Source: Paraphysomonas bandaiensis (Eukaryota; Protista; Chrysophyceae). Taken from it: a stretch of 19,083 nucleotides of DNA. The notes under the pieces are model-generated. The model did not search any database and was not told where the DNA came from. It saw only the letters and a list, made by a program, of their open reading frames with translations. The stretch is from positions 1 to 19,083 of the forward strand of contig CBFFRP010000223.1 in assembly GCA_965644295.1 (NCBI GenBank). Reading direction: 5' to 3'. Positions 1,597 to 17,264 of this stretch are shown one piece after another; within the stretch, counting starts at the first letter, position 1; each line of letters opens with the position of its first letter. A program made the translations under genes and the position numbers.

Positions 1597-4500
1597 ATGA
1601 TGACCCCAGATTACTCAGAACAGATGATATTACTAGCTGATCTGTCGTTATCAACTACTTCTGTATCAGATTTATTCGAAGCCATTCGATGCTCTTTGAG
1701 TTGGCAGTATGGTGAAGATAGTGTAATAAGGTCAGTCATTTTATTCGCCACGTACTCATATATCTCTGTAATGATATTTACACTCATAGTTTGAAGGCTA
1801 TCATTCTTAGAAACCCCAAGCAAGCTTTCGTTTTTCTCGACAACACTAGTATTGCTGAGCGATTGGCTTCTGAACCGATGATTCATTTGTGAGTATAGAA
1901 TTCAAGTTAGGAATACATTTTTGATGTGATATGTAGGAGTGGTCCTTTGACTGCTAGCTTTAGTCGTGTAGGAGACAAACCCACTGAGTATATATTCATT
2001 CAGTCTGCACGAGATATTCAGCTCAGCTATACGATGAGAGATATCAAAGGAATATTAAAGGACCCTGATGATGCGTCAGCATCGTTTTCATGTTCTTTTT
2101 ACTGCCGTAGGTCGAGTATTATCATTAAGCTTCCTTCTTCAGAAGTGGCTGCGAATGTACAGCAGAAGTTGTCAACTGTGAGTGGGGTACAGTCATCTTG
2201 CATAGTGACTGCGGATCGCTTTACGTGCGTAGAATGTTTCTGGAACTCCACCATTACTCTTACTGAGGCAATGAATCGCCTTCGTCGTAGTGGGCAGAGT
2301 CTGTCTGGCCTAATAGGAGGCTTCCTCTGTCTGCTGGACGAGCAGCCGTGTATTGTGGACGTAACTGTCCTCACAAGGTCTACCCAGAGCACACGACACT
2401 CCTCTCCCGATCTTGTGCTTGTGTGCTGCACAGAGAATGACGCGGATATGGTCCGAGCCTGTGGGCGCATAGAATTAGGAATGATAGGAAGCATCAGTGT
2501 TGCTAGTACACATGATATGGAGGAGAGAGGAAGTGAAAAATCTGATGCCTCTGTGCTATCTTCAGAAGGTACTATCGATACAGCCCCTCTCGCTCACATT
2601 CCAACGCCTATTTCATCGTCCCGAGGGCCCTCTATTAAAGAGTGTTACGTCTTCTGGGATATGGAGAACTGTCCATTGAGTAGTGATGATGCTGTAACTG
2701 TTAACGGTAACCTTGATGACGCATTTAGTCAAGCTGTGGGATCGGGTTGGAACGTACGCCAAATTTCCAGTACTAAGTTGGTCTTCCTTGCCCACGACAC
2801 TAGTTCTGCCTACAAACCTACGTCTAAGCAACTCAACGACTTGGTGGATATGCAGTATCGCATTATTGGTTACGTCAAGCGTAGTGGTACGGATTCGGGC
2901 ATTAAAGGTGAGGTCGATGCCATGATTCGCCGCCATCGAGGTGACGAGACGAAGCCAGCTGTGTGTCTTGTGACCGGTGACTGGGACTTCGGCCCTATGC
3001 TGAATACTCTGTTAGCAGAAGGGTTCTGTGACACACTCTTGGTGCACAGTTCTGGGTCACGTAGTGGTATAGTTTCGCTGGCCCCAAAGGCCCTTCCTTG
3101 GTGTATGGTGCGACAACTGCATCGAATGTCCCAGCAGGATCGATCTTGTGCGCTCTCATTTAATTCAAATCACCCTAATTACGAGAGACTTTTTAAGAAA
3201 TGTATAGTGGAGGGTGAGGGTTCATCATTTAATGGTACTTCTAAAGGGCTCTCCAAAGGAGTGTCCATTACCAAGAGTATTCGTGTGTCTCGCTTTTCGA
3301 TGGCCGCTCACTTGAGTAATCTGATGAAGTGGAAGGAAGAGGAATCAGCTAATGGTGGTGCTGTTGCGGGGATAGAAGAAATTGATGACAGATGGGTGAA
3401 TTCTCATGCTGACCCTTGTCACATTGAGGTGTCCATTGACCGCGACAGACGGAAACAAAAAGTGGTCATCACAGGGAACAGTGAAGAGGTGGTGAAGGCC
3501 AAGTACGATTTTGTGGAATCTACTCTGAGTACCCTCACGCATAATAGAAAGGTTCTACGTATGCATGGCTGGAAAACGCACCACAGGGAGGCCATGATGG
3601 GGTCATTGCCACTGGGTATCAAGGCCCAGGCTTTTCGAACCACTGTTGTGTTCCACGTTACGGACGGCCATATAGTCTCTGAAATGATGTCGACAAGCGA
3701 GTCTGGTTTGGCCAAAATGACTGACTACCTAAAGAACTTGGAACCTACTGAAGCGGACTGGCAGTTTGATTCGAAACACCTTATTCCCGAACCGCGCGTC
3801 AGATTCTGGAACTCACTTCGTAACAAGTATGCTGTAATGTTCGACAAAGTACTAAAAAATGACAAGTTAAATGTGAAGGCCTGGGGATTTGGAAGTATGA
3901 TGGAAGAGGCATACAATGATGTTCTGGCTGCTTCACAAGGACGACCTGCTCCCTACACAACTGCTCCGGTGCTACAGCACCCTTCGAGGAATCGTGATGT
4001 AGGTGATGAGGGGGAGCCTATACACATTGCACTCTATAGCTTTAAGGACAAGGACGCCGGACTCTTCTATATGACATATGAAGATATGTTCCAGCGGTAC
4101 TTTACACACACCTATCGTGTGTCTGTGACGCCCATTTCTTCTCCAGCTGGAGCCAGTGGTGACACCGCTAACGCTATTAAAAATGGGTATCTAGTGGTGG
4201 ACATCAGGGGAAGACAAGAGGATATAGCTGCTACTACTAGGTATATGGACAGTATGAGGGGCAACATTAACTCCCACGAGGTATATCTGTCAAAAGTTGA
4301 CTCTAAAAAATATAAAGAAATCTGCGATCTAAAGGTATAGAGTGTTTGCCGTAGAATATACATCCTGTATACATGGTGCTCAAGCAGCTGTATGTGAATG
4401 TCCATGATGCGACGTCGTTAAATTAGTTTTTTGTCTAACTGGGTCGCTTTTACTACAGGACAGCTCACTTAGTGGTCAGGTTGCTGAGGCAATCAAAACG

Positions 4501-6427
4501 TCATCTGTTAATGAAGACCCACTCGATTGCCCTGGCCTTATATGCATTCGAGTTCGACCCTCCATGCACCCTAAAGGAGTAAAGTACGTATGATCATATT
4601 AGTCGTTGTCTTACCTGTGCTATCTTCTAATACTTGCTCTACATGTGCAGGAAAATGTCGTTTCCCACTGATGTTAGTGTGTTTGTCACCGAATCTGCTA
4701 ACACAGCTGCTCTTCACGGTAGCCGAGATGGCCGCTCCCCAAAGATGGAACGGATTTTACGCAAATTCAGCGATCTTGACCTTCCTTCTCTCCATCAAGA
4801 GTCCGGGTCGTATGAGCGCCACAGCGATGACAGCTCAAGTGCGACAGGCTTTGAGACTTCAGAAGATATGAAGCTCTGGTTGTCGTCTATGTCTCAGTCT
4901 TCCTCTCCGCATGCAGCATTCCGATCTCCAGGAAGTGAGCCATACAGCGAATTTTCCCTTCCTTCTCCCCGCCTCAGCTATACTGATGCAGTGAAAGCTA
5001 CTGGCCCTCCTGGAATCGCTGGACCTTCGCCGGAGTCTGCGCCTGTTGAGCCCGTATTTAAGAAGCCTGTGCATTGGCCGCATTCCTCCTTTCGGTACAT
5101 GTTTCTGGCGGAGAGTATGAAAACGCATATTCACTCTACTGTGGATCTAATTAAAAGCAAATTTGGGGAGTCTGTTACTGTCACGTGTCCTTATCGTACG
5201 TACCACTATATGTAAAGTATAAATATTTATTCATTTGTATCTGATAGGCGACAAAAAAGACGCTTCTGTATGCCTGCTTGTTGAAGGACCTCAAGAGGGT
5301 GTTGAATTTGGTGTCAGGGCTTTCGATGAGATGCTTGCACGTGTGCTGGAAGAGTTGAGCAGTGTCGAGGTTGTGTTGTCGGATCCTCAATATGACAAAC
5401 TCACAGCGATGGATCTTGCTACCGTCAAAGCCATCCAGGGTTCGGCAGGGGTACATATCATGTAAGTATACGCGCATTAGTGTTGCTTTGTGTACGCTGC
5501 GTTCGTTTTTCCTTTCTGTCACGATGCCTTCATAACTTCATGAAATAGGTTGACTCCGTCTGCCTCCGAATTGTCTGCTGCTCCCCGTACTGTGGACATG
5601 CGGACTCTGCAACCTCGATCCGTCTGTTCCTCTGATACTATATTAGCTCGTCTACCTAGCTTCAATAAGCGACATGTGAATTTATCTGTGATTTCCACAT
5701 CTGCTGATGCGGAAGGCTGGACATGGGGGGTTAATTGCTTATTTGTCATTTTGGAGAGAGATGACGACTGTGGATTGTCTCAGCAGGAGGCAGAGAAACT
5801 AAACCATGGTGAAGTGTTAGTGACCACAGACTTTGAAAGCGGCAAGACCATTCTCAGAGCACGAGCAGCTCCCGTGATGAGGGGTCACCACGATCCATCG
5901 ATGAGTACAGAACAGCTTTTAGTAAGCGTAATTGGTAGGGGCTTGGCCCAGGCTGATATCCTGGGCATGCCTGGAATAGCTATTGTAAGTGGAGATATAG
6001 ATGCAATGAATTTTCTGATGTTGCTTTATGACAGGTGACCCCTGATCTCCTCAATGCATTTGCATCTCTCTCTACAGAACGTATTCAAAGCCTTACCGTT
6101 TCGGCGGTGGTTGAGTACATTCGCACTCACCAAGTTTTCAATCTTGATCGCGTTGTATGTTTGGACGTCATCAGAAATGACACCTCGCCATTCAAGAGTA
6201 TGGTTCAATGCTCATATATGGCGGAGTCACTATGTCGAATAGTGAAAGACGTAAAGGATTGCTCTTTCCCAGTATGCAATGACCCGGTATGTTCCCTTTT
6301 ACTTGGATCTAAGGCCCCATCATCTAAGAATAACCGAGATGCATCTGTACACTCCCTTGTCCTTAAGGGCACAGAGCCTTGTCTGAATACCGCAATTGAC
6401 GAAGTCAAAGAAGCAATCACCGCATAA
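1597..6427 (+). CDS. Multi-exon gene (~1447 aa): RRM-like repeats + NYN (PIN-fold) ribonuclease + KH-like repeats + degenerate macrodomain
   Basis: Predicted exons: 1597-1730, 1790-1888, 1937-4334, 4459-4583, 4651-5195, 5248-5461, 5549-5984, 6035-6427. All introns are GT..AG and phases join ORFs 1522, 1926, 4634, 5235, 5550 and 6035 into one frame (4344 nt). NYN motifs: VFWDMENCP, KRSGTD, LVTGDWDFGPML. The 5' start is uncertain (an acceptor at 1555 could link to upstream exons). Confidence 0.8.
1620..2510 (+). other. N-terminal RRM-like repeats (2-3) of the NYN gene
   Basis: Spliced sequence MILLADL...LKAIILRNPKQAFVFLDNTSIAERLASEPMIHLSGPLTASFSR fits the RNP2/RNP1 (AFVxF..A) and 'G.pl.vsfs' RRM pattern. 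More divergent units follow: SSIIIKLPSSEVAANVQQKL and DLVLVCCTENDADMV..GRIELGMIGSISVAS. Confidence 0.5.
2643..3110 (+). other. NYN domain (MARF1/limkain-b1/LabA-DUF88 type), acidic catalytic residues present
   Basis: CYVFWDMENCP (D..N), YVKRSGTDSGI (D), CLVTGDWDFGPMLNTL (GDxD), and TLLVH...LVSLA-like..LPW at the C-terminal end. These match the canonical NYN motif order. Confidence 0.85.
5673..6170 (+). other. Degenerate macrodomain (spans intron 5985-6034)
   Basis: LNHGEVLVTTDFESGKTILRARAAP...EQLLVSVIGRGLAQADILGMPGIAIVTP...LSTERIQSLTVSAVVEYIRTHQVFNLDRVVCLDV follows the macrodomain pattern (GevvvT..G.L..k.IiHav.P...L...cL..A...g..SIAfP...L..V.fv). The GDI, NAAN, GGGV and GxxG loops are not recognisable. 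Confidence 0.6.
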
Positions 6428-7541: not shown

Positions 7542-10141
7542 TTAAAGTGATTTAAATGTATAAACGAACCGCTCCTGGTCATGGTCACTTGGGATAATGC
7601 TAAGAATGTGCGTATGATAAGCACGAAGAGACGCCCTGTGGCCTACAAATAAAATAACAATGATGCACCACCCTAACAATTCAAACCATGAGTACCTACT
7701 GATAGTACGGTCGGAACAGCATCAATCAGACTAGCATAGAGCTGCCTCTCCATTTCTTCGTCAAGAGCACTTGTTGCTTCGTCTAGACACACCTACATCA
7801 TGATATTTGACATACATATAGGTTGTAGATTAGACATAAACCCACCATACTAGGAGAGGCGTACAAAGCTCGAGCAATAGCAATTCTCTGCTTCTCACCC
7901 CCAGATAGAGAATCTGGCGAGACTGTCCTCTGGGACCTTTTAAGGCAATCCAGTCCTGTTCTAGATATGATATCGGTCATTCTACTAAGAGAATCTCCAC
8001 CAGTTGGAAGCGTGGAGGGGTAACATATGTTATCTTCAACTGAACCCTAAATGTGTCAGGGTCATATTCATATCAATAGCAGGCGTTTGTCCGCAAACAG
8101 TGTCGCGATTCGATGGATGGACATACAGTGAAACACAAGCATGAGGCTACCTGTACAATATAGCACTGCTGTGGAACGAACACAATTTCTTCTTTACTAC
8201 ATGAAAAAAACACTCCGCTGCCATCACCCTGGCAACTGTATACGGGTGTTACAGATGAGTCTATCCAAAGTCCAGCCAGTATCCTGAGGAAGCTGGTCTA
8301 TACATTCATGTCAGAAAACCACTCGACAATAGAAGTAAGACTTCTCGTGCATGAATTATATAGATGCAGCCAATCGATATGCAAAGAAATATTCCCTACC
8401 TTCCCACATCCAGATGGTCCACTCAAAAGAACTCTCATGCCTGTACAGTCGACACAGTGAAAATAGATACCTATGCAATGCCCAGTGCAACGACTACCAC
8501 ACAGACAATGGCTATTAGCAAAATACAGATGCGTTACCTGAGCTTATCTGGAATGTCAAGTTTTCCAATAACACTTTGTTCGGTGCATTGTTTACAGATG
8601 GTACTTTCAACGCCAAGTTGTGCACAGACAATACTCGAGAGTTCTCTCTTGCAGTAATTAAATCAGATCCGCTCAACTCAGCCCTGGAGGTGAGCTGTAT
8701 AGTCCCCCCATCAAACCTACGAGCGTCGTGTGTATGTAGATGACGTGTGTCATTTCGAGGGGACGATACATCGTCCCCTACTGTTAGGCCATTACACTCC
8801 ACGTCCATCTGATCGGTATCAACACACTTCTGGCCGGAAGACAACTTGACATATCCTTGGCGAGACACTGGCGTCGCAAATATAGCCCTAAAAGATTCCC
8901 TACCCACTACATCCCATAATCCTGGTTTATTCTTCCATACTTCATTACGCGTGCTACCACCATGACTATTACAAACACGTACGTGACCACCACAGGTAGT
9001 TCTTTTGCTGCTATTGTTTACAACTGCATATGAACTGCTCATATTCGCCACATCACTGTCAGACACCCCACAGGCCCGTATTAACTCACATACACGGGCT
9101 GCCAAAGCCACACCCTCGGATATACCCTCGTACGTTCCCAGAAGGGTAGAGAAGGCGCTGATAAGGGACAAGCAAGCATACGAACCTTCAGCTAATAAAG
9201 ATGCGAGATCAGAAGATGATTGATCTGAATTTCGAGAGCGGGATATATACAATACCGACAGACCAACGACAGCATAATTCACTGTGTATGTCTGTTAGAG
9301 CATTCCCTAAATATATGATACGAAGATCGATTGAGGTATGCTTACCTATGGACCCCAAGTAACTAAACCAGTTAACAATGAGGTAGAGTGGCAACTGAGC
9401 ACTTATTATATCCGAAATCTTTCCTACTAATTCTTTAAAAGCCCCTGTCACCCTTTGTGCCTCTTGCCTTTCCCCTCTAAGCATAGATATTGACTCTGCA
9501 AACAGCTTCAACTTCACGTGCAGGAGTCTAAACTCTCCTTCTAAGGCCTCCTGTTCATACACCAGGGGGACTAATTTACGGGCCTGTAGGTATGTACACA
9601 CTGAGCCCACTACGAAGTATAACACACAAGCTACAGGAGCAATAAACCCAACTTTATACCACAGATACACAGAATAAAATGCTATTACGCCAGGGATAGC
9701 GACAATGTCACCCAGTACAGTTGCACACTGATTCGTTAGTCGAAATAAATCCTGTGTGATTCTCTGATCAGGATTATCTACACTTACACCATCACACACT
9801 TTATAAATAATTCCATCTGGTAGAACATAACAACTGTGAATGAAGTTGACAAGTTGTTGTCGCCATTGTAATGCACATACTTCTAAATAATAAGTTTTCA
9901 ATGATTTGAGTAATGCTACAACTGATATGACTAAAACAGACATCCACAAACACTTCACAAGTAAGTTGAAGTCTTGACTGGATACTGCATAATAAAATTT
10001 TGATATAACACTCATTATAGCGATTGAACTGATCTCAAATATGAGTGATATTACTATGAATGTGAGGATGTTGTATATCTTCCAGGTGCCTGTTATTTCA
10101 TACTTTAAACATACCCTAGCGACCATCTGTAGATCCTCCAT
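7542..10141 (-). CDS. ABCD4: ABC transporter subfamily D half-transporter, ABCD4-like (lysosomal cobalamin transporter type), ~708 aa
   Basis: Predicted exons (minus): 10141-9346, 9281-8538, 8440-8400, 8297-8151, 8046-7846, 7792-7696, 7642-7542, all GT..AG and in phase (2127 nt). Motifs: DNPDQRITQD, EAA-region EQEALEGEFR, Walker A GPSGCGK|TS, Q-loop FVPQ, signature LSGGEKQR, Walker B/D-loop VCLDEATSALD, H-loop SVGHR. YLGSIVNY and the short N-terminus resemble ABCD4 rather than ABCD1-3. Confidence 0.88.
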
Positions 10142-10647
10142 GCTACAGAGGGATTAGATGGTGAGTTGGAGAGGGTTTGATTGAGTATGTGAGGTGGGTT
10201 GGTTATGTTGTGTGACTTAACTGTTCTTATGTATGTATGTATATGTATGTATGGTGCATATGTATGTACATGGACACGTACATCTAGACTTGACATGACC
10301 ATATATGGGTGTACTGCTGTACTTGGATGGCTTCTATAGCAGTACATGTATAGGATGAACAATAAGGTATGGGATGTACTATACGACAACTCCATCTGTA
10401 CACACCCACATCAATATGTACCTATGTATTACTCGTCCAGCTGTACAACAACTATAGTATCTCTATATTCTATGTACTGTATATACAGTGCAGCAGTACA
10501 TACTATCACATCAATCCCTTAAATTCGAATACCTGAACTCTCATATCAATCCATAGCTCTGGACTATACCATAGTGTGATAGAATAGACCATTGAGTGAT
10601 ATAATCATAACAAAATGGGTACTCTCTGAATTATTAATCAAGTTTCA
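10142..10647. promoter_or_regulatory. Short (~506 bp) divergent intergenic region between ABCD4-like and KATNIP, probable bidirectional promoter
   Basis: The two start codons (10141 minus, 10648 plus) face away from each other across AT-rich non-coding DNA. Confidence 0.5.
10228..10270. repeat. Imperfect (TATG)n microsatellite
   Basis: tatgtatgtatgtatatgtatgtatggtgcatatgtatgtaca is visible directly in the sequence. Confidence 0.75.
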
Positions 10648-13600
10648 ATGGATCATGTGTCCCCTAAAGTAATATATATATATATACAGGATGATATGGA
10701 TGAGTGTGTATATACAGGGGGGAAAATCACATCTTGTCAAGAATGAAGAATATATTCAACAATTAGAAGAAAAGAATCGTTTAAAAAAAAAGATGTCTGC
10801 TAAATCATTACGAGAGAAACAAGCGGAAGAGAGAGAAAGAGGGTTTACTACACATTTCGCGGGTGCTAATAGCACTGGTAAACCTGTTAGTGTTAAACCA
10901 GTGGTTAAAGGAATGACTTTTCAGCATCTTGCATCGAAAGGTGGATCGGAGGGAAGGTAGAGGATCTTGTAGTGGGTCATTGCGTTATGTAATGGGAATT
11001 TGTAGTAGTAAGAGGAGAGGATGGGCAGCTGACGCCCCAAAGTTTATCGTAGGACAAGGTGGACCAGTGCCTATAAAGGTATGACATAAAGTACATGTAT
11101 TCTATCCATCCAGAGTAATTACACTTTTAGGTTGGGCGTGGAGGGCACGGGATATCTCCTCGCAATGCACACAACGTAGATCGGGTAAGCTACATACTAC
11201 ATCTGGATGTGCAGATTTTCTACTATTTCACGATGTATATCTGCTACACACGATAATATATGCCGAGAATATGTTGTAGATATTGTAATCCGCGCTATGC
11301 TACATTATTTTGCGTGCCTATATATGCAGACACAATGCCTATGATGTCACATGTCAACGTACACAGCAGGAAACACACTGGGATGAAGGTGGATATGACG
11401 ATGGCGACGAAGTTGACGAGGAGGAGGGCGTAAGTGGTGGTGATGACAACGAGGAATCTTTTATAATGGAAGACTCTCTCAGGGATCCTGATGATGAGGT
11501 CCTGTTTATTTTACATGATGTGCGCGTAGAATATATGTAATAGCAGAAAAAATGACGTTCAGTTTGTGTGTGAACTATTTTACTGTGTATTAGTGGGAAT
11601 ACGAGCCCATGTTATTAATAGATTGACGTGTATCTCATCTTATGAATACGCCAATGTACCTGATGTGAGCATATATGTACGCAGGATGATGATGGGGGTG
11701 ATTACGACGAGGACTTCGAAGAGGAGGATGATGAAGACTTCGATGAAAGTGAGGAAATTGGACTACGTGATCGGGTTCAGTCTGGAGGACGCTCCACCGG
11801 GTCATGGGGGACACGGCCAGTGAACAATACAACTCCTGTTAGCAAAGTACCGGCCACCAGTCCGATTACTACCCCACCTGCTAATGATATTCGGGTTGTC
11901 AGTAGTAAAGTGCAGGCTACCACCCCTCCAGTAGCGGTGCCGGCCCCATTGCGTAAGAGTGTTTCTATGTCTGATGTTGAGAGGGAAGGTGGAAGTAGTG
12001 CTCGAGAGTTAGAAGCATTGCGTTCGGAATACAACCACTCCACCAAGTCGCAGAAAGCTTTGATGAGAGATAGCCTTGAAGACTCTGTGCACCACCATCC
12101 ATCTTCTGTCAGTAATACAACAGAAAATACTGGAGACCCGTCAGTTGTTGCTTTGGCATCACGATTGGCTTCTCTTAGTGCCGCCCAACAAAACCAGCTG
12201 CTGGCTATGCTGAATAAACTTGAGTCTGGAAGTGGTGATACCCCGCTGACACCGACGCCCGGCAAGTCCACTGCTCCAACTAACACTGGCGATTTGCCGC
12301 CGTCCCCTGCGAAAAGCCCAAAGAAGAAGAAAAAGCGGTCTCCTAGGCGCAAAAAAGACAAGTCTAATCGGTCAACGGAGCTTAGCATGTCTACATCCGT
12401 GGGGGCTGTCGATTGCGAAACAGCGAATCGTACTGGTTTTTCTGTTCTCGAAGAAGATATGCAGAAGGAATGCGCCTCAGGAAACCCTCCTAGCGTTGTT
12501 TGTCCCTCTAGTGAGGACAAGAAAATTTCGGTGGGCGAGCCATGTGATAAACCGTCTACTGATTTGCCCAAGACTCCAGTGACGATAAAAATAAAGTTAC
12601 ATAATTGCTGGAAGAAAACGAGACATGGGGTACTCTCTGCTATGCGCCTTCTGGTGCGACAAACGGACACAGAAATAGACCTATCCTCGTTTACAGTTCA
12701 GGTTTCATCGGGTAACACGGTGCTACCAAAGTCCTCAGAAGTGGTGCACAGTATCCCATCTCTCATCACTCATAGTCGAGTGGTAAAACGCAAGGATTGG
12801 AGGTTTCCGGTTGGAGTAGGGATGAGCACTCAATTAGTATTTACTGGTAACATTTCAGGTAAGTCCAAGTATTGTGGCCACAACCTCATGTAGGTGTTTT
12901 TATTGTAAATACGGAATATGTTTATGTACATACACTTCTGCAATAGTATTCTGCCGCATTTTTATCACAACTTTAATAATGTCGGTTTGTAGTACCTGTA
13001 GATGACTTAGAACTACTCGTGTGGAATGGTATAGGCGATGCAACGAGCTCTCCTGTTCAAGACACGGATGTGTACGTAGATGGCTCCTTGGTGTGGTCAG
13101 GGGTTTTAGAAGAGGCGCCTAAGAGTGATGAGATGGACACGACAATTGCTTCCGATCCCCGTGGACTTAGGGGTAGAGAGCTTTCGCCGCGTCTACTTGC
13201 CTGCACTCATGGCGGTGGGCGCCCTCCCTCTAATACTATCCCTCTGTGTGCTGAACTTGCTCAATCTAAGAAGAAAACAGTGAGGACTACAGTACCACCT
13301 TTAGGTGGAATTCGTGAGTCGCGACCTGAATCGATGACTGAACAACAAAATACAACTAAAACCGATGTATCACTCAACTTCTCGGGGCTATCTTCGGCGT
13401 CATCTGTCGGTATGTCCACAACCGACTTCCTCAATATGGAGGGCACGACGGGGAAGGAAAGAGCTAAGGAGTCAATAGGAAAATCTAGTACGAAAGGCGA
13501 CCCTGACTGGTTGTCTGATCTCAAAACACCAAGAGATGGCATCGCATCTGAAAAGGAAGGTGCAGATGGTCGAAGTGTTGGAAGTGTAAGACACGTCGAC

Positions 13601-16600
13601 ATTTTTGCTGAGGACGGAATGGTTCCTTTAGGTGCGAGAGGGTCCCGGCCAGGTAGTCGTAGGAGAGGTAATGATAGTGGTGCGTCGAATGAAGTGAAGA
13701 GAACACCGAATGATGGTTTCGGATCTGACTATACTCCCCCAGACGCAGAGAGAGGAACCAACACAGAAGACAACAGTTCGAGTACCAAAAAAGCGTCAAG
13801 AGGATCTAGAAGACGGGGAGGGGGTGAAAGTGTATCGGCATCACCACCTTGTGAGTCCTTAGATGCTAAGAGAACCCAACGTCAAGATATTCATCAATCA
13901 GGAGGTAGACGTAAGAGTCGTAGAGAGACCCAGAAAGAAGAGGAGGAGTCACTCAGACAAAGTTTGGAGGCCCTGAGGAACTCCGACAGGCGCAATAGAG
14001 GGAGACTGGAGCAGGAGCTGCATACAGTTGGCGGTGGAAAGGATCACAGTAATAGTGGTACTGGTGGTATGCCACAGATTTCTGAAACAGGCGATGACGA
14101 TGGGGAGGGAGGAAGTAATGCCACTCCAGTTTCTCTGGAGTCTACCACCGCTGTAAACATTAGCAATATGCGTATGAGGGCGTTAGAGCAAGTTTCTGGT
14201 GGTGCTCTTGATAAGGAGTTGGGGAAAATGGAGGGGAATCAGAAGTCTATGCTCCGGCAACGGTCGCAACGAATTGATCAGGTACAGGAAACAGTTTCGA
14301 GTGCGCTGGCGAGTCTCGCTGGTGTTATGGCAACCTTGCCAGGGGCTCCCAAAGGAGAACCAGAACACGCTAAACTGCAACTGTCATCCTCGAGGCCCAA
14401 CTTAGATTCTGAGTCAGTGTCCATGGCCCCGCAAACCTCTAATTTGGACGTAGCGAACCCACCTGATGATCCAATGGCTAATATAAACATTGACGACTTG
14501 TTGGCGGATAGCTTTATGGAAAGCAGTGTATGTGAAATTCCAGTGATGCCTAAAGGCCGAGTATTTGAAATAGAAATACTCTCTACATGGGGTGACCCTT
14601 ACTATGTCGGCTTAAATGGAATTGACATATTCGATCATGAGGGTAATATACTTCTATTGGATGAGGATATTGTGTCGATAATGGCTAATCCCAGCGATAT
14701 TAATGTCCTTCCCGAGTATAACGATGACCCTAGAAAGGTGGAAAATATTTTGGATGGAAATAATTTTACTAGAGATGACTTGCACGTGTGGCTTGCTCCT
14801 CATGGAACAACTATGACCCCTAAGCTGACATATGCGGCTACGATTACTATTACATTCAGCAAATTTACCACACTTTCGCTAGTTCGCGTGTGGAATTACA
14901 ACAAGTCGCGTACACACTGCTATCGCGGCGTTCGTCGGTGCCGAATGAAACTGGACAGTCGGGTTATATTCGAGGGGGAGATCAGAGCGGCGCCTGGGGT
15001 AATTACGAATTCTGAGGACTGCTCTGAAGTGATATTGTTCAGTACCGACACAACTGCACTGGGTAAAATTGCCTCGTATGATGCATCCGTGGGATATTAC
15101 GTCGCGGGTGGATCGGAAGAGGAGTCCAGCCGGAAATGGCTTGAAACATTAAAGGAAAGGAAAGCTGATACCCGACCCAGAACCGCAGACAAAGGATCTG
15201 GCAGTAAGGCAGGAAATGCAGAAGTTCTTACCAGACGCAAACATGCTCCATCCAAGCCCAGTGCCCCTTTTGAAGCGGTAGTGGATCCCTCTAAGGGACG
15301 ACCCGTAACGGCCGCAGTCAGATCTGACAGTATAAGTAGTGTGTCGCCACCAGTACCATCCGTAGCGTCCCACATTGGTACGACTTTGAAATCAGAGAAG
15401 CAGTTAGAATCTGAGTCGATAATTCACGCTCCTGAGTCTAGTGTGGATGACGGCTCTCTAGTTGAGTGTCGCGTCTTAACTTTTGTTATCGAGCGCACAT
15501 GGGGAGATAAGTGCTACGTGGGTCTGGCCGGATTGGAAGTTTTGATTGGTAGTTCATGTATCGTAGCCGATATTGATCCTAAGCTCATTGATGCCAGCCC
15601 GAGAGACTTGTCTGTGATTGGCTGTTTCGATGATCCAAGAACTCCAGATAAGCTTGTAGATGGTGTAAACGACTCTACCGACGATACACACATGTGGTTG
15701 ATACCCTACTCCAAAGGATCAACTCATGAACTCAAGATAGACATGGGATCTCGGTGCAAAGTGGCTGGATTCAATGTATGGAACTACAACAAGTCTCCTG
15801 AGGATGCACTTCGGGGGGCACGTGTAGTAGCTGTGTCTGCTGATGGGGTGCCGCTCGGACGATGTGAACTCCGCATTGCCCCCGGATGCGACGGGGTAGT
15901 ATACAGGCAGCAGATAATGTTGAAAGACATCAAAGCTAATGCTCTGGTATCCCAGCACCGTGATGTCAGGTACATTACACCTTCTGTGAGGCAAGACTAC
16001 GAAGTACCAATGTTGCCATCTGGGTCCCTTTGGAGATTCAATTTGTACTGTAACTGGGGGGACGGGTACTACATAGGCCTGGATGGCTTAGAATTTCTCG
16101 ATGAGCATGGCACCCCTATCCCATTGGAGTCACCTGTTTGTCGCGTCACTGCATGTCCGCATTCCCTCTTAGATATTGGTATGGATGACTCTAGAGTTCC
16201 TTCAAATCTAGCGCGGAGCCCTATGCACGACTCCACCGGAGGAATGGCCTGGTTAGCTCCATTATCTCAATGTATGACTGAGGAAGAGAGAGTGAATTGT
16301 CTTAAGCGAGTGTCGGCGACTCAACGAACACAAGTGAAGCCAACAAAATCCCACCATGACGTATATGAAGAACATGAGCCCTTGTTTTATGACGACAATA
16401 CCCTCTTTGTCATGTTTGACAGACCGGTGACGGTGTCTGTGATACGGTAAGTGATATAACTACACCGATGCTGTTTGTATGCACTCCTATTCTCTTTTTG
16501 CATTGTTGTTGATTGGTGATGAGTGGATTGTAACTTTGAAAGTGTAGGTTTTATAACTACAGCAAGTCTCCGAAGCGAGGGGTAAGAGAAGTAGGTATAG

Positions 16601-17264
16601 ATGTAGATGGAAGCGTTGTTTTCATGGGCACTCTTCGGTCGTCCGACAGGTACATAGATTGTTCTAACGTGTTCATTTTGGCGTGTGTTTTGTGCGTCTG
16701 GTTCTTTGTTTTACATGCTGTGGCTTACATCTAACTTGTACCTAAATGTTGTGTAGTGCCGGATTCAATCCCAGCGATGGGCAGTCTGTGGTTTTCACTA
16801 ACGACCCCAAACTGACACGTCCGGAGAAGAGTAAGGTAATGCCCACCAAGTCTAATTGATACATATACAACGTATATGCAGTTATGTACCGATGTGCAAT
16901 GCTGTTATGGTTTTATCTTCTTCATAGTTTATTTATTGTGGTCAGAGTTGGTCTACATTCATTTGTGACATGATTGTACAGAGTATATACTGTGTTTGTG
17001 ATGGTGTATGAGTGGTAGCTTATATAGAAACGTGGGCTAATCTGATGGTGGGTTCAGGTGTGCTACTGTGGCTCAGGAGAACAGGACGTCTTGTGCATCA
17101 ACGAAAGACAGGTTATTGTACGATCAAAAGCTATGTACGAACAACCGAACGTTTCCACCGAAGGTATATACTCAGACCTCAGCAACAGGTTAGCCATCCT
17201 ATATCACACCGCTGTGTTTCGCTAATGTATGCATCACAGGCCAACGACATCTCATGTAACATAG
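10648..17264 (+). CDS. KATNIP: Katanin-interacting protein (KIAA0556/KATNIP), DUF4457 repeats, ~1827 aa; ciliary/basal-body protein
   Basis: Predicted exons: 10648-10668, 10718-10956, 11006-11078, 11131-11184, 11367-11498, 11685-12858, 12993-16446, 16548-16649, 16757-16835, 17058-17188, 17240-17264, GT..AG and in phase (5484 nt). N-terminal EEYIQQLEEKNRL..ERGFTTHFAGAN and RRGW motifs. Three repeats of WGDxxYvGLxGxE..DxRxPxxL..W..(W/Y)NYxKS..RG at ~14570, ~15480 and ~16030. C-terminal EQDV and RPTTS. Exon 1 and alternative acceptors (11367/11370, 12993/13002) are uncertain. Confidence 0.92.

Follow-up and report, generated by a model that had tools for sequence, protein, structure and literature searches.

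In animals and plants, multi-domain ribonucleases built around a NYN domain, such as MARF1, N4BP1, KHNYN, and the plant protein DNE1, play a central part in degrading mRNA and in keeping viruses and transposons under control. To our knowledge, their counterparts in stramenopiles are little known. Our study concerns a gene found at positions 1597 to 6427, on the forward strand, of a 19,083-nucleotide stretch of DNA from Paraphysomonas bandaiensis (Chrysophyceae; GenBank assembly GCA_965644295.1, contig CBFFRP010000223.1), the whole of which is referred to here as the window. On balance, we consider it probable that this is a nuclear gene of a Paraphysomonas-type chrysophyte that encodes a modular RNA-binding NYN endoribonuclease of 1447 amino acids, a member of an uncharacterised stramenopile family. 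In the order read from models, matches, and sequence patterns, the protein consists of three RRM-like domains, a NYN domain of the MARF1 type, five or more degenerate KH-like units, a macro-like domain, and a terminal strand-Gly-helix piece. Its NYN domain is of the MARF1 kind, and the set of accessory domains around it is a different one.

Comparison with described systems

MARF1 has a NYN domain of the same type and is both the best structural match and the only PDB sequence match of our protein; three of the four active-site aspartates of MARF1 are aligned with Asp in the window, and RRM-type domains adjoin the nuclease. However, the RRM-like domains of the window protein precede the NYN domain, whereas the RRMs of MARF1 come after it; a KH-like array and a macro-like tail are present here, and the position of MARF1 Asp427 is occupied by Ser. 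MARF1 also has multiple LOTUS/OST-HTH domains, for which neither the window exons nor 30 relatives gave a Pfam match, and because these repeats are lacking, the protein is not a MARF1 orthologue.

A different resemblance is found with PARP14 and PARP9 (together with DTX3L), in which three RRM-type domains, a run of KH-type units, and macrodomains follow each other in the same order as the RRM-like, KH-like, and macro-like parts here. The KH-like sequences are degenerate in both, the macro-like domain possibly lies within a split KH-like unit, as in these proteins, and the macrodomains of PARP14 and PARP9 are among the fold matches. The differences are that here the NYN domain stands between the RRMs and the KH-like array, that there is one macro-like domain instead of two or three, with no evident ADP-ribose loops, and that the host is a stramenopile. 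In our searches, Pfam gave no PARP match at E<=1 in any exon and none in the relatives, no WWE match was obtained in the exons or in 30 relatives, and the chain ends at 6427; since it has no ADP-ribosyltransferase and no WWE domain, the protein is not a PARP. A sequence-only reading of the window, made before our analysis, had described a PARP14-like scaffold without PARP or WWE domains. Both absences were borne out, and the likeness held in domain order and fold but not at the level of sequence, where none of the searches returned PARP14 above threshold; common descent is unproven.

N4BP1 and KHNYN also combine KH-type modules and a PIN-like nuclease in one chain, and one faint match to KH_N4BP1_1st was obtained in a relative (P0014). 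Their nuclease, however, is of the Zc3h12a type, whereas that of the window is PF01936, with no other nuclease family at E<=1; those proteins are devoid of RRM and macro parts and differ from it in size and in the order of their domains. Because the nuclease is of a different type, our protein is not a relative of N4BP1 and KHNYN, and of the NYN parallels drawn in the sequence-only reading, only the one with MARF1 stood. GLD-3/Bicaudal-C and vigilin share with it tandem KH-type units, some of them without the GXXG loop, and this likeness includes a GLD-3 KH fold match and a faint KH_Vigilin match; unlike the window protein, those scaffolds carry neither a nuclease nor a macro-like domain.

Gene structure and splicing

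The gene model that we obtained is as follows.

1597-6427, forward strand: whole gene, 8 exons and 7 introns, 1447 codons, TAA stop at 6425-6427
1597-1730, forward strand: exon 1, ATG at 1597, phase 2 at its end, N-terminus alignable with those of P0001, P0014, and P0019
1790-1888, forward strand: exon 2, 33 codons, homologous to an unbroken stretch of P0001 and also to P0018 and P0019
1937-4334, forward strand: exon 3, 799 whole codons from 1938, encoding RRM-like domains 2 and 3, the NYN domain, and KH-like units a to d
4459-4583, forward strand: exon 4, open frame with colinear homologues
4651-5195, forward strand: exon 5, conserved at both ends, with a Ser/Pro-rich low-complexity middle at about 4778-5062
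5248-5461, forward strand: exon 6, colinear homologues, family alignment
5549-5984, forward strand: exon 7, colinear homologues, family alignment
6035-6427, forward strand: exon 8, carrying the stop, colinear homologues

The exons add up to 4344 nucleotides, which give 1447 amino acids and the TAA codon, in agreement with the single spliced frame of about 1447 residues that the sequence-only reading had proposed. None of the eight contains an internal stop when read in its entering phase. All seven introns have GT..AG borders and lengths of 48-124 nucleotides, their content of guanine plus cytosine is 25-41% as compared with 38-50% in the exons, and read-through of five of the seven would bring in stops. 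As the pattern of one gene, this combination of exons, frames, and introns is far beyond chance.

Homology searches were conducted exon by exon, each separately. With tblastn, seven exons matched in order on three metagenomic eukaryote contigs (exon 3 at E 4e-142). The metagenomic open reading frames P0001 (contig L001) and P0002 (contigs L002/L003) had come from a word search with the exon-3 product; exon 2 was revealed by the alignment with P0001 and has matches in 15 relatives. Exons 5 and 6 form one frame without a break on L002, and so do exons 7 and 8; because the neighbouring exons are contiguous in one frame there, the intron is absent from L002 at those junctions. On L001, no break separates exons 1, 2, and 3, and a single frame runs through exons 7 and 8. 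Some of the introns are thus missing from relatives, precisely at the predicted junctions. In P0014, a continuous homologue of 1537 amino acids, all tested junctions agree to the residue: the exon matches cover residues 10-42, 79-899, 909-940, 942-1168, 1170-1240, 1242-1408, and 1409-1535, and exons 4 to 8 adjoin with the one-residue gaps that split codons predict. The exons are likewise colinear in the transcriptome-derived relatives P0019 (Mallomonas annulata) and P0105 (Paraphysomonas imperforata). Because of this colinearity in P0014 and in the transcriptome-derived proteins, the reading of the exons as separate genes fails.

A MARF1-type NYN domain with its acidic site

2634-3227, forward strand: NYN domain of the MARF1/limkain-b1 type, alpha/beta in the model, exon-3 residues 233-430, identified by Pfam, Foldseek, phmmer, and the family profile

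We modelled the exon-3 product with AlphaFold using 97 aligned sequences (mean predicted local distance difference test score, pLDDT, of 85.6), and the model contains two RRM-like domains, the NYN domain, and four KH-like units. When it was compared with the PDB by Foldseek, the NYN domain of MARF1 (6fdl, 5yaa) came first, with a template modelling (TM) score to target of 0.75-0.79 and a probability of 1.0. In the window, NYN (PF01936) scored 24.1 bits, just under its Pfam cut-off of 24.2, and it was the sole family at threshold among the exons, the relatives, and 30 family members. Searches of PDB sequences point to the same protein: MARF1 alone was matched by the NYN stretch with phmmer (E 0.07) and by the full family profile (E 6e-4); profile A1 gave no real match.

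All four acidic positions are intact in the window copy, namely D241, D319, D348, and D350 in exon-3 numbering, and the first three are aligned with Asp358, Asp426, and Asp452 of MARF1. These three residues belong to the acidic patch that MARF1 needs for cleavage (PMC6294520). The Asp at position 350 is additional in the window. The first Asp is near-invariant, being present in 46 of the 48 family NYN regions in which the position exists. The NYN domain with retained acidic residues that had been read from the letters is thus found in the model, with three of the four positions matched to MARF1 aspartates, and every motif quoted in that reading is present in the translations at its place.

RRM-like and KH-like modules

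The modules on either side of the NYN domain, and those encoded by exons 4 to 6, are the following.

1597-1888, forward strand: RRM-like unit 1, exons 1-2, putative, from the pattern of strands and helices in the sequence only, no Pfam match
1977-2246, forward strand: RRM-like domain 2, exon-3 residues 14-103, ferredoxin-like in the model, Foldseek
2247-2528, forward strand: RRM-like domain 3, exon-3 residues 104-197, ferredoxin-like in the model, Foldseek
3267-3542, forward strand: KH-like unit a, exon-3 residues 444-535, strand-helix-strand-strand-helix, faint KH_PARP14_3 and KH_Vigilin matches
3549-3734, forward strand: KH-like unit b, residues 538-599, type I order strand-helix-helix-strand-strand-helix
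3744-3935, forward strand: KH-like unit c, exon-3 residues 603-666, from the model
4023-4265, forward strand: KH-like unit d, residues 696-776, type I order, faint KH_N4BP1_1st match at the equivalent place in P0014
4528-4777, forward strand: conserved unit, possibly a further degenerate KH-like unit, exons 4-5, from the family alignment
5063-5357, forward strand: KH-like unit e, end of exon 5 and first half of exon 6, strong family conservation, faint KH_PARP14_6 match in the L002 homologue

Among PDB structures, the tandem-RRM proteins NONO, SFPQ, PSPC1, Sxl, HuD, and DND1 were matched by the exon-3 model at a probability of 0.96-0.98. The KH array of GLD-3 (3n89) was matched at a probability of 0.80. 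Secretin N-domains, which are KH-like, were also among the matches. In the model, units b and d show all the elements of a type I KH domain in order, and units a and c are one helix short. Each KH-like unit is closed by a strand-Gly-helix element, as expected from the sequence-only reading, which had listed repeated endings of this kind next to RRM-like units. Pfam gave faint sub-threshold KH matches (KH_PARP14_3, KH_PARP14_6, KH_Vigilin, KH_N4BP1_1st, and KH_1), those to the PARP14 KH families only at E 0.065-0.23 in the exons and in the open reading frames of the relatives. Comparison of the family's own units with each other by hhalign was too weak to show that they are mutual repeats. An identification of the repeats as LOTUS domains was rejected on the basis of their different topology and the lack of a Pfam match, and Pfam matches to SnoaL, CinA, and the HrpB connector were attributed to chance.

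Macro-like domain and C-terminal piece

5358-5461, forward strand: candidate N-terminal half of a split KH-like unit, a hypothesis from sequence pattern and conservation
5667-6181, forward strand: macro-like domain, exons 7-8, by way of the model of relative P0004 and its alignment to the window exons
6344-6424, forward strand: C-terminal strand-Gly-helix piece, candidate for the other half of the split KH-like unit, family conservation

The macro fold was read from a structure model of P0004, a continuous relative of 349 amino acids that is 35-39% identical to exons 7-8. Foldseek gave 146 PDB matches to this model at E<=1e-3, with TM scores to target of 0.5-0.62, and the top-listed ones are macrodomains or their derivatives: macroH2A, the second macrodomain of PARP9 (MD2), Af1521, PARP14 MD1/2, MacroD2, YmdB, and designed or fusion proteins. 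The modelled fold is macro-like yet divergent. It is at the level of fold, and in this relative, that the macro-like region predicted near the C-terminus was recovered; the proposed verification by AlphaFold and Foldseek gave, in addition, the RRM-like, NYN, and KH-like folds of the exon-3 model. Neither the window exons nor 30 relatives matched the Macro family of Pfam. A Gly-Trp-x-Trp-Gly-Val stretch close to the beginning of the domain is conserved in the family alignment; glycine-rich loops were not seen in this alignment, the places where they were expected being taken from general knowledge of the fold.

In PARP9 and PARP14, the macrodomain or macrodomains are inserted in a split KH domain (PMC10450202). 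By hypothesis, the macro-like domain of the window protein might also sit inside a split KH-like unit. The sequence pattern at the end of exon 6 resembles the four elements with which a KH unit begins, and the C-terminal strand-Gly-helix piece is conserved in 17 of 17 long relatives. When the two pieces were compared separately by hhalign, the C-terminal one gave a weak match (probability 37%, E 3.6e-4), which lay in the C-terminal half of unit e, and the N-terminal one matched nothing. The last strand is not formed in the model of P0004, a protein that does not possess the first KH half.

An apparently undescribed family of chrysophyte-type stramenopiles

A complete scan of 1.84 billion representatives with HMMER gave 94 proteins at E<=1e-3, of which 56 reach E<=1e-10 and 16 reach E<=1e-30. 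Many members of the family are 1331-1989 amino acids long, the taxon labels obtained from cluster look-ups, for two relatives, are Mallomonas and Paraphysomonas, and all source names read "hypothetical protein". According to the family hidden Markov models, the order of NYN domain, KH-like units a-d, macro-like domain, and C-terminal piece is kept in 23 of the 28 long members; the truncated P0109 is a twenty-fourth with that order, minus the C-terminal piece only. Some members, not all, have the RRM-like pair. A full-text literature search found no description of a protein with NYN, KH, and macro parts or of the family itself. These results point to a conserved and apparently undescribed family of chrysophyte-type stramenopiles. 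The sequence-only reading had regarded the architecture as one that it did not recognise; it is indeed absent from the literature that we searched, but it is not a one-off, being shared by a conserved family with 94 cluster representatives.

The acidic residues of the NYN domain have been lost in P0001, P0019, P0057, P0101, and others, in which the KH-like and macro-like parts are still conserved, and this suggests that the family includes nuclease-dead paralogues. Two members of the P. imperforata type have a bromodomain in place of a recognisable NYN domain. In the congeneric P0020/P0105 (P. imperforata, MMETSP0104), which is only about 30% identical, the bromodomain lies near the N-terminus. 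Judged by sequence comparison, Paraphysomonas has divergent paralogues with exchanged N-terminal modules. In the relatives, a short Pro-Pro-x-His motif followed by an acidic stretch occurs twice, ahead of the conserved exon 4-5 unit and a second time directly in front of the macro-like domain; its counterparts in the window, at 4528-4600 and 5600-5680, are only partly retained. The recurrence of this motif hints at an internal duplication. Intron positions vary between the lineages of the family. The genes adjacent to the relatives on L001 and L002/L003 encode LUC7, ribosomal protein P0, NOT2/3/5, and glycosyl hydrolase 1, and since they differ from the neighbours in the window, there is no conserved synteny.

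Proposed function and alternatives

The analysis above shows how the gene is built, how its domains fold, which acidic residues they keep, and to which family it belongs; RNA binding, cleavage, and a cellular role are inferred, as follows. The RRM-like and KH-like arrays would hold single-stranded RNA, partner proteins, or both, and would deliver the substrate to the NYN site, where the clustered aspartates would bind a divalent metal and cut the RNA internally, by analogy with what has been shown for MARF1. The protein might thus act as a cytoplasmic nuclease of RNA decay or surveillance. As the macro-like domain has no evident glycine-rich ligand loops, it is more probably a structural module, or one for a non-canonical ligand, than an ADP-ribose hydrolase. 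The family would represent a third way to arm a NYN nuclease, by means of RRM-like and KH-like arrays and a macro-like domain, and the presence of both intact and degenerate active sites among its members offers a natural series for separating nuclease and scaffold roles.

It is important to consider that several observations weigh against an RNA-binding nuclease. Type I KH domains have a GXXG loop between their first two helices. This motif is absent from the helix-helix loops of all KH-like units of the exon-3 model; G-x-x-G occurs in the exon-3 product only at residues 124, 181, 321, 689, and 738, all of them outside those loops, and because the loop is lacking, RNA binding by the KH-like units is not assured. 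Pfam placed neither RRM nor KH above threshold in the separate exons, the open reading frames of the relatives, or 30 family members. The macro-like fold comes from a relative, and the model of that relative is of middling confidence (mean pLDDT 63, with residues 79-245 confident). Regarding the active site, the position of MARF1 Asp427 is Ser320 in the window, of the 68 NYN regions that were aligned, 19 are acidic at all four positions, and in P0001 three of the positions are no longer acidic; because many members do not have the acidic set, catalysis may not be the core role of the family. Finally, two protein collections contain no copy that shares more than 50% identity with the exon-3 product, though the transcript product of the neighbouring gene is present there, and for this reason the gene has no transcript-derived entry in those collections. 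Expression of the gene may be weak or depend on conditions, or else the transcriptome may have gaps.

Some of these observations would fit a mainly non-catalytic scaffold for the assembly of ribonucleoproteins, with the KH-like array and the macro-like domain as its core and a NYN domain that binds RNA or is vestigial. At most one acidic residue is found at the four aligned positions in 23 of the 68 NYN regions, a count that includes fragments in which positions are missing; in PARP9/DTX3L/PARP14 and GLD-3, KH-like units that lack GXXG are known to serve as modules for contacts between proteins; and the best-conserved parts of the family are the KH-like and macro-like ones. We nevertheless consider such a scaffold unlikely for the protein of the window, where all four acidic positions are retained, and the near-invariance of the first Asp in the family speaks against it as well. 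To a similar degree we doubt a dedicated immune effector, an analogue of the interferon-response proteins of animals in which the arrays sense RNA of viruses or transposons and the NYN domain destroys it. The domain list is reminiscent of PARP14/PARP9 and MARF1, the family is divergent, with several distant copies within one genus (such as P. imperforata P0105), the loss of active sites is patchy, as in fast-evolving families, and the lack of the gene in the transcriptome-derived collection would fit inducible expression. However, that lack has many other possible causes, the neighbouring genes encode an ABCD transporter and a KATNIP-like ciliary protein and none is an immune gene, and among viral structures (BFVD) Foldseek matched the exon-3 model only to generic giant-virus NYN/LabA-like proteins, with no further viral counterpart.

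A coupling to ADP-ribose on a scaffold homologous to PARP14, in which an ADP-ribose-type mark on RNA or protein would be recognised by the macro-like domain, which would in turn license the NYN domain to cut, is in our assessment very unlikely. It would account for the shared domain order (three RRMs, a KH array, and macro), for the PARP14 and PARP9 macrodomains among the fold matches, for the faint Pfam matches to two PARP14 KH families at corresponding unit ends, and for the possible position of the macro-like domain within a split KH-like unit. Against it stand the failure of every sequence search to give PARP14 above threshold, the position of macroH2A, and not PARP14, at the head of the macro matches, the lack of visible glycine-rich loops in the macro-like alignment, the view that PARP14 is a metazoan invention, and the weakness of the hhalign evidence for the KH split. 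The more general idea that the array of RRM, KH, and macro modules, with macro in a split KH, is truly homologous to that of PARP14/PARP9 we hold to be decidedly improbable; it would be an old portable reader scaffold that was joined to an ADP-ribosyltransferase in animals and to a NYN ribonuclease in chrysophytes, in which RNA cleavage would be gated, through the macro-like domain, by a mark of the ADP-ribose type. If the likeness to PARP14 were due to common descent, the view of the origin of the PARP14 scaffold would change; if it were due to convergence, this order of modules would be a favoured solution for handling long RNAs. Regarding the gene itself, it is hardly conceivable that the model is an artefact, made of exons from at least two genes or from a pseudogene. 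The protein collections hold no transcript of the window gene, as such an artefact would predict, but every exon is open with consistent phases, the exons are colinear in P0014 and in the Mallomonas and P. imperforata proteins, and some of the introns are missing from relatives at just the predicted junctions. We retain the modular RNA-binding NYN endoribonuclease as the preferred reading.

Genomic neighbourhood

Rfam and tRNA scans of the window gave nothing. Downstream of the gene, a KATNIP-like ciliary gene is encoded at 10793-17261 on the forward strand (DUF4457, E 1e-120), in at least nine tblastn blocks separated by gaps of 22-216 nucleotides. It is 99.5-100% identical to P0123, a transcriptome protein of 1795 amino acids from Paraphysomonas (Chrysophyceae; MMETSP1103); the exon at 13019-16447 has 100% identity to it by BLASTP, and the block at 12992-16447 has 99.7% by tblastn. 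Because P0123 maps in blocks with short gaps, short introns in this genome have been checked against a transcript product, and by the match of this neighbouring gene, the window is assigned to the Paraphysomonas lineage. A human origin of the contig was rejected in view of the short introns and the Paraphysomonas match, and there is no viral component. Between both genes, at about 7542-10395 on the reverse strand, we identified a multi-exon half transporter of the ABCD type, with ABC_membrane_2 (E 2.5e-39) at 9209-10141 and an ABC_tran fragment at 7798-7977.

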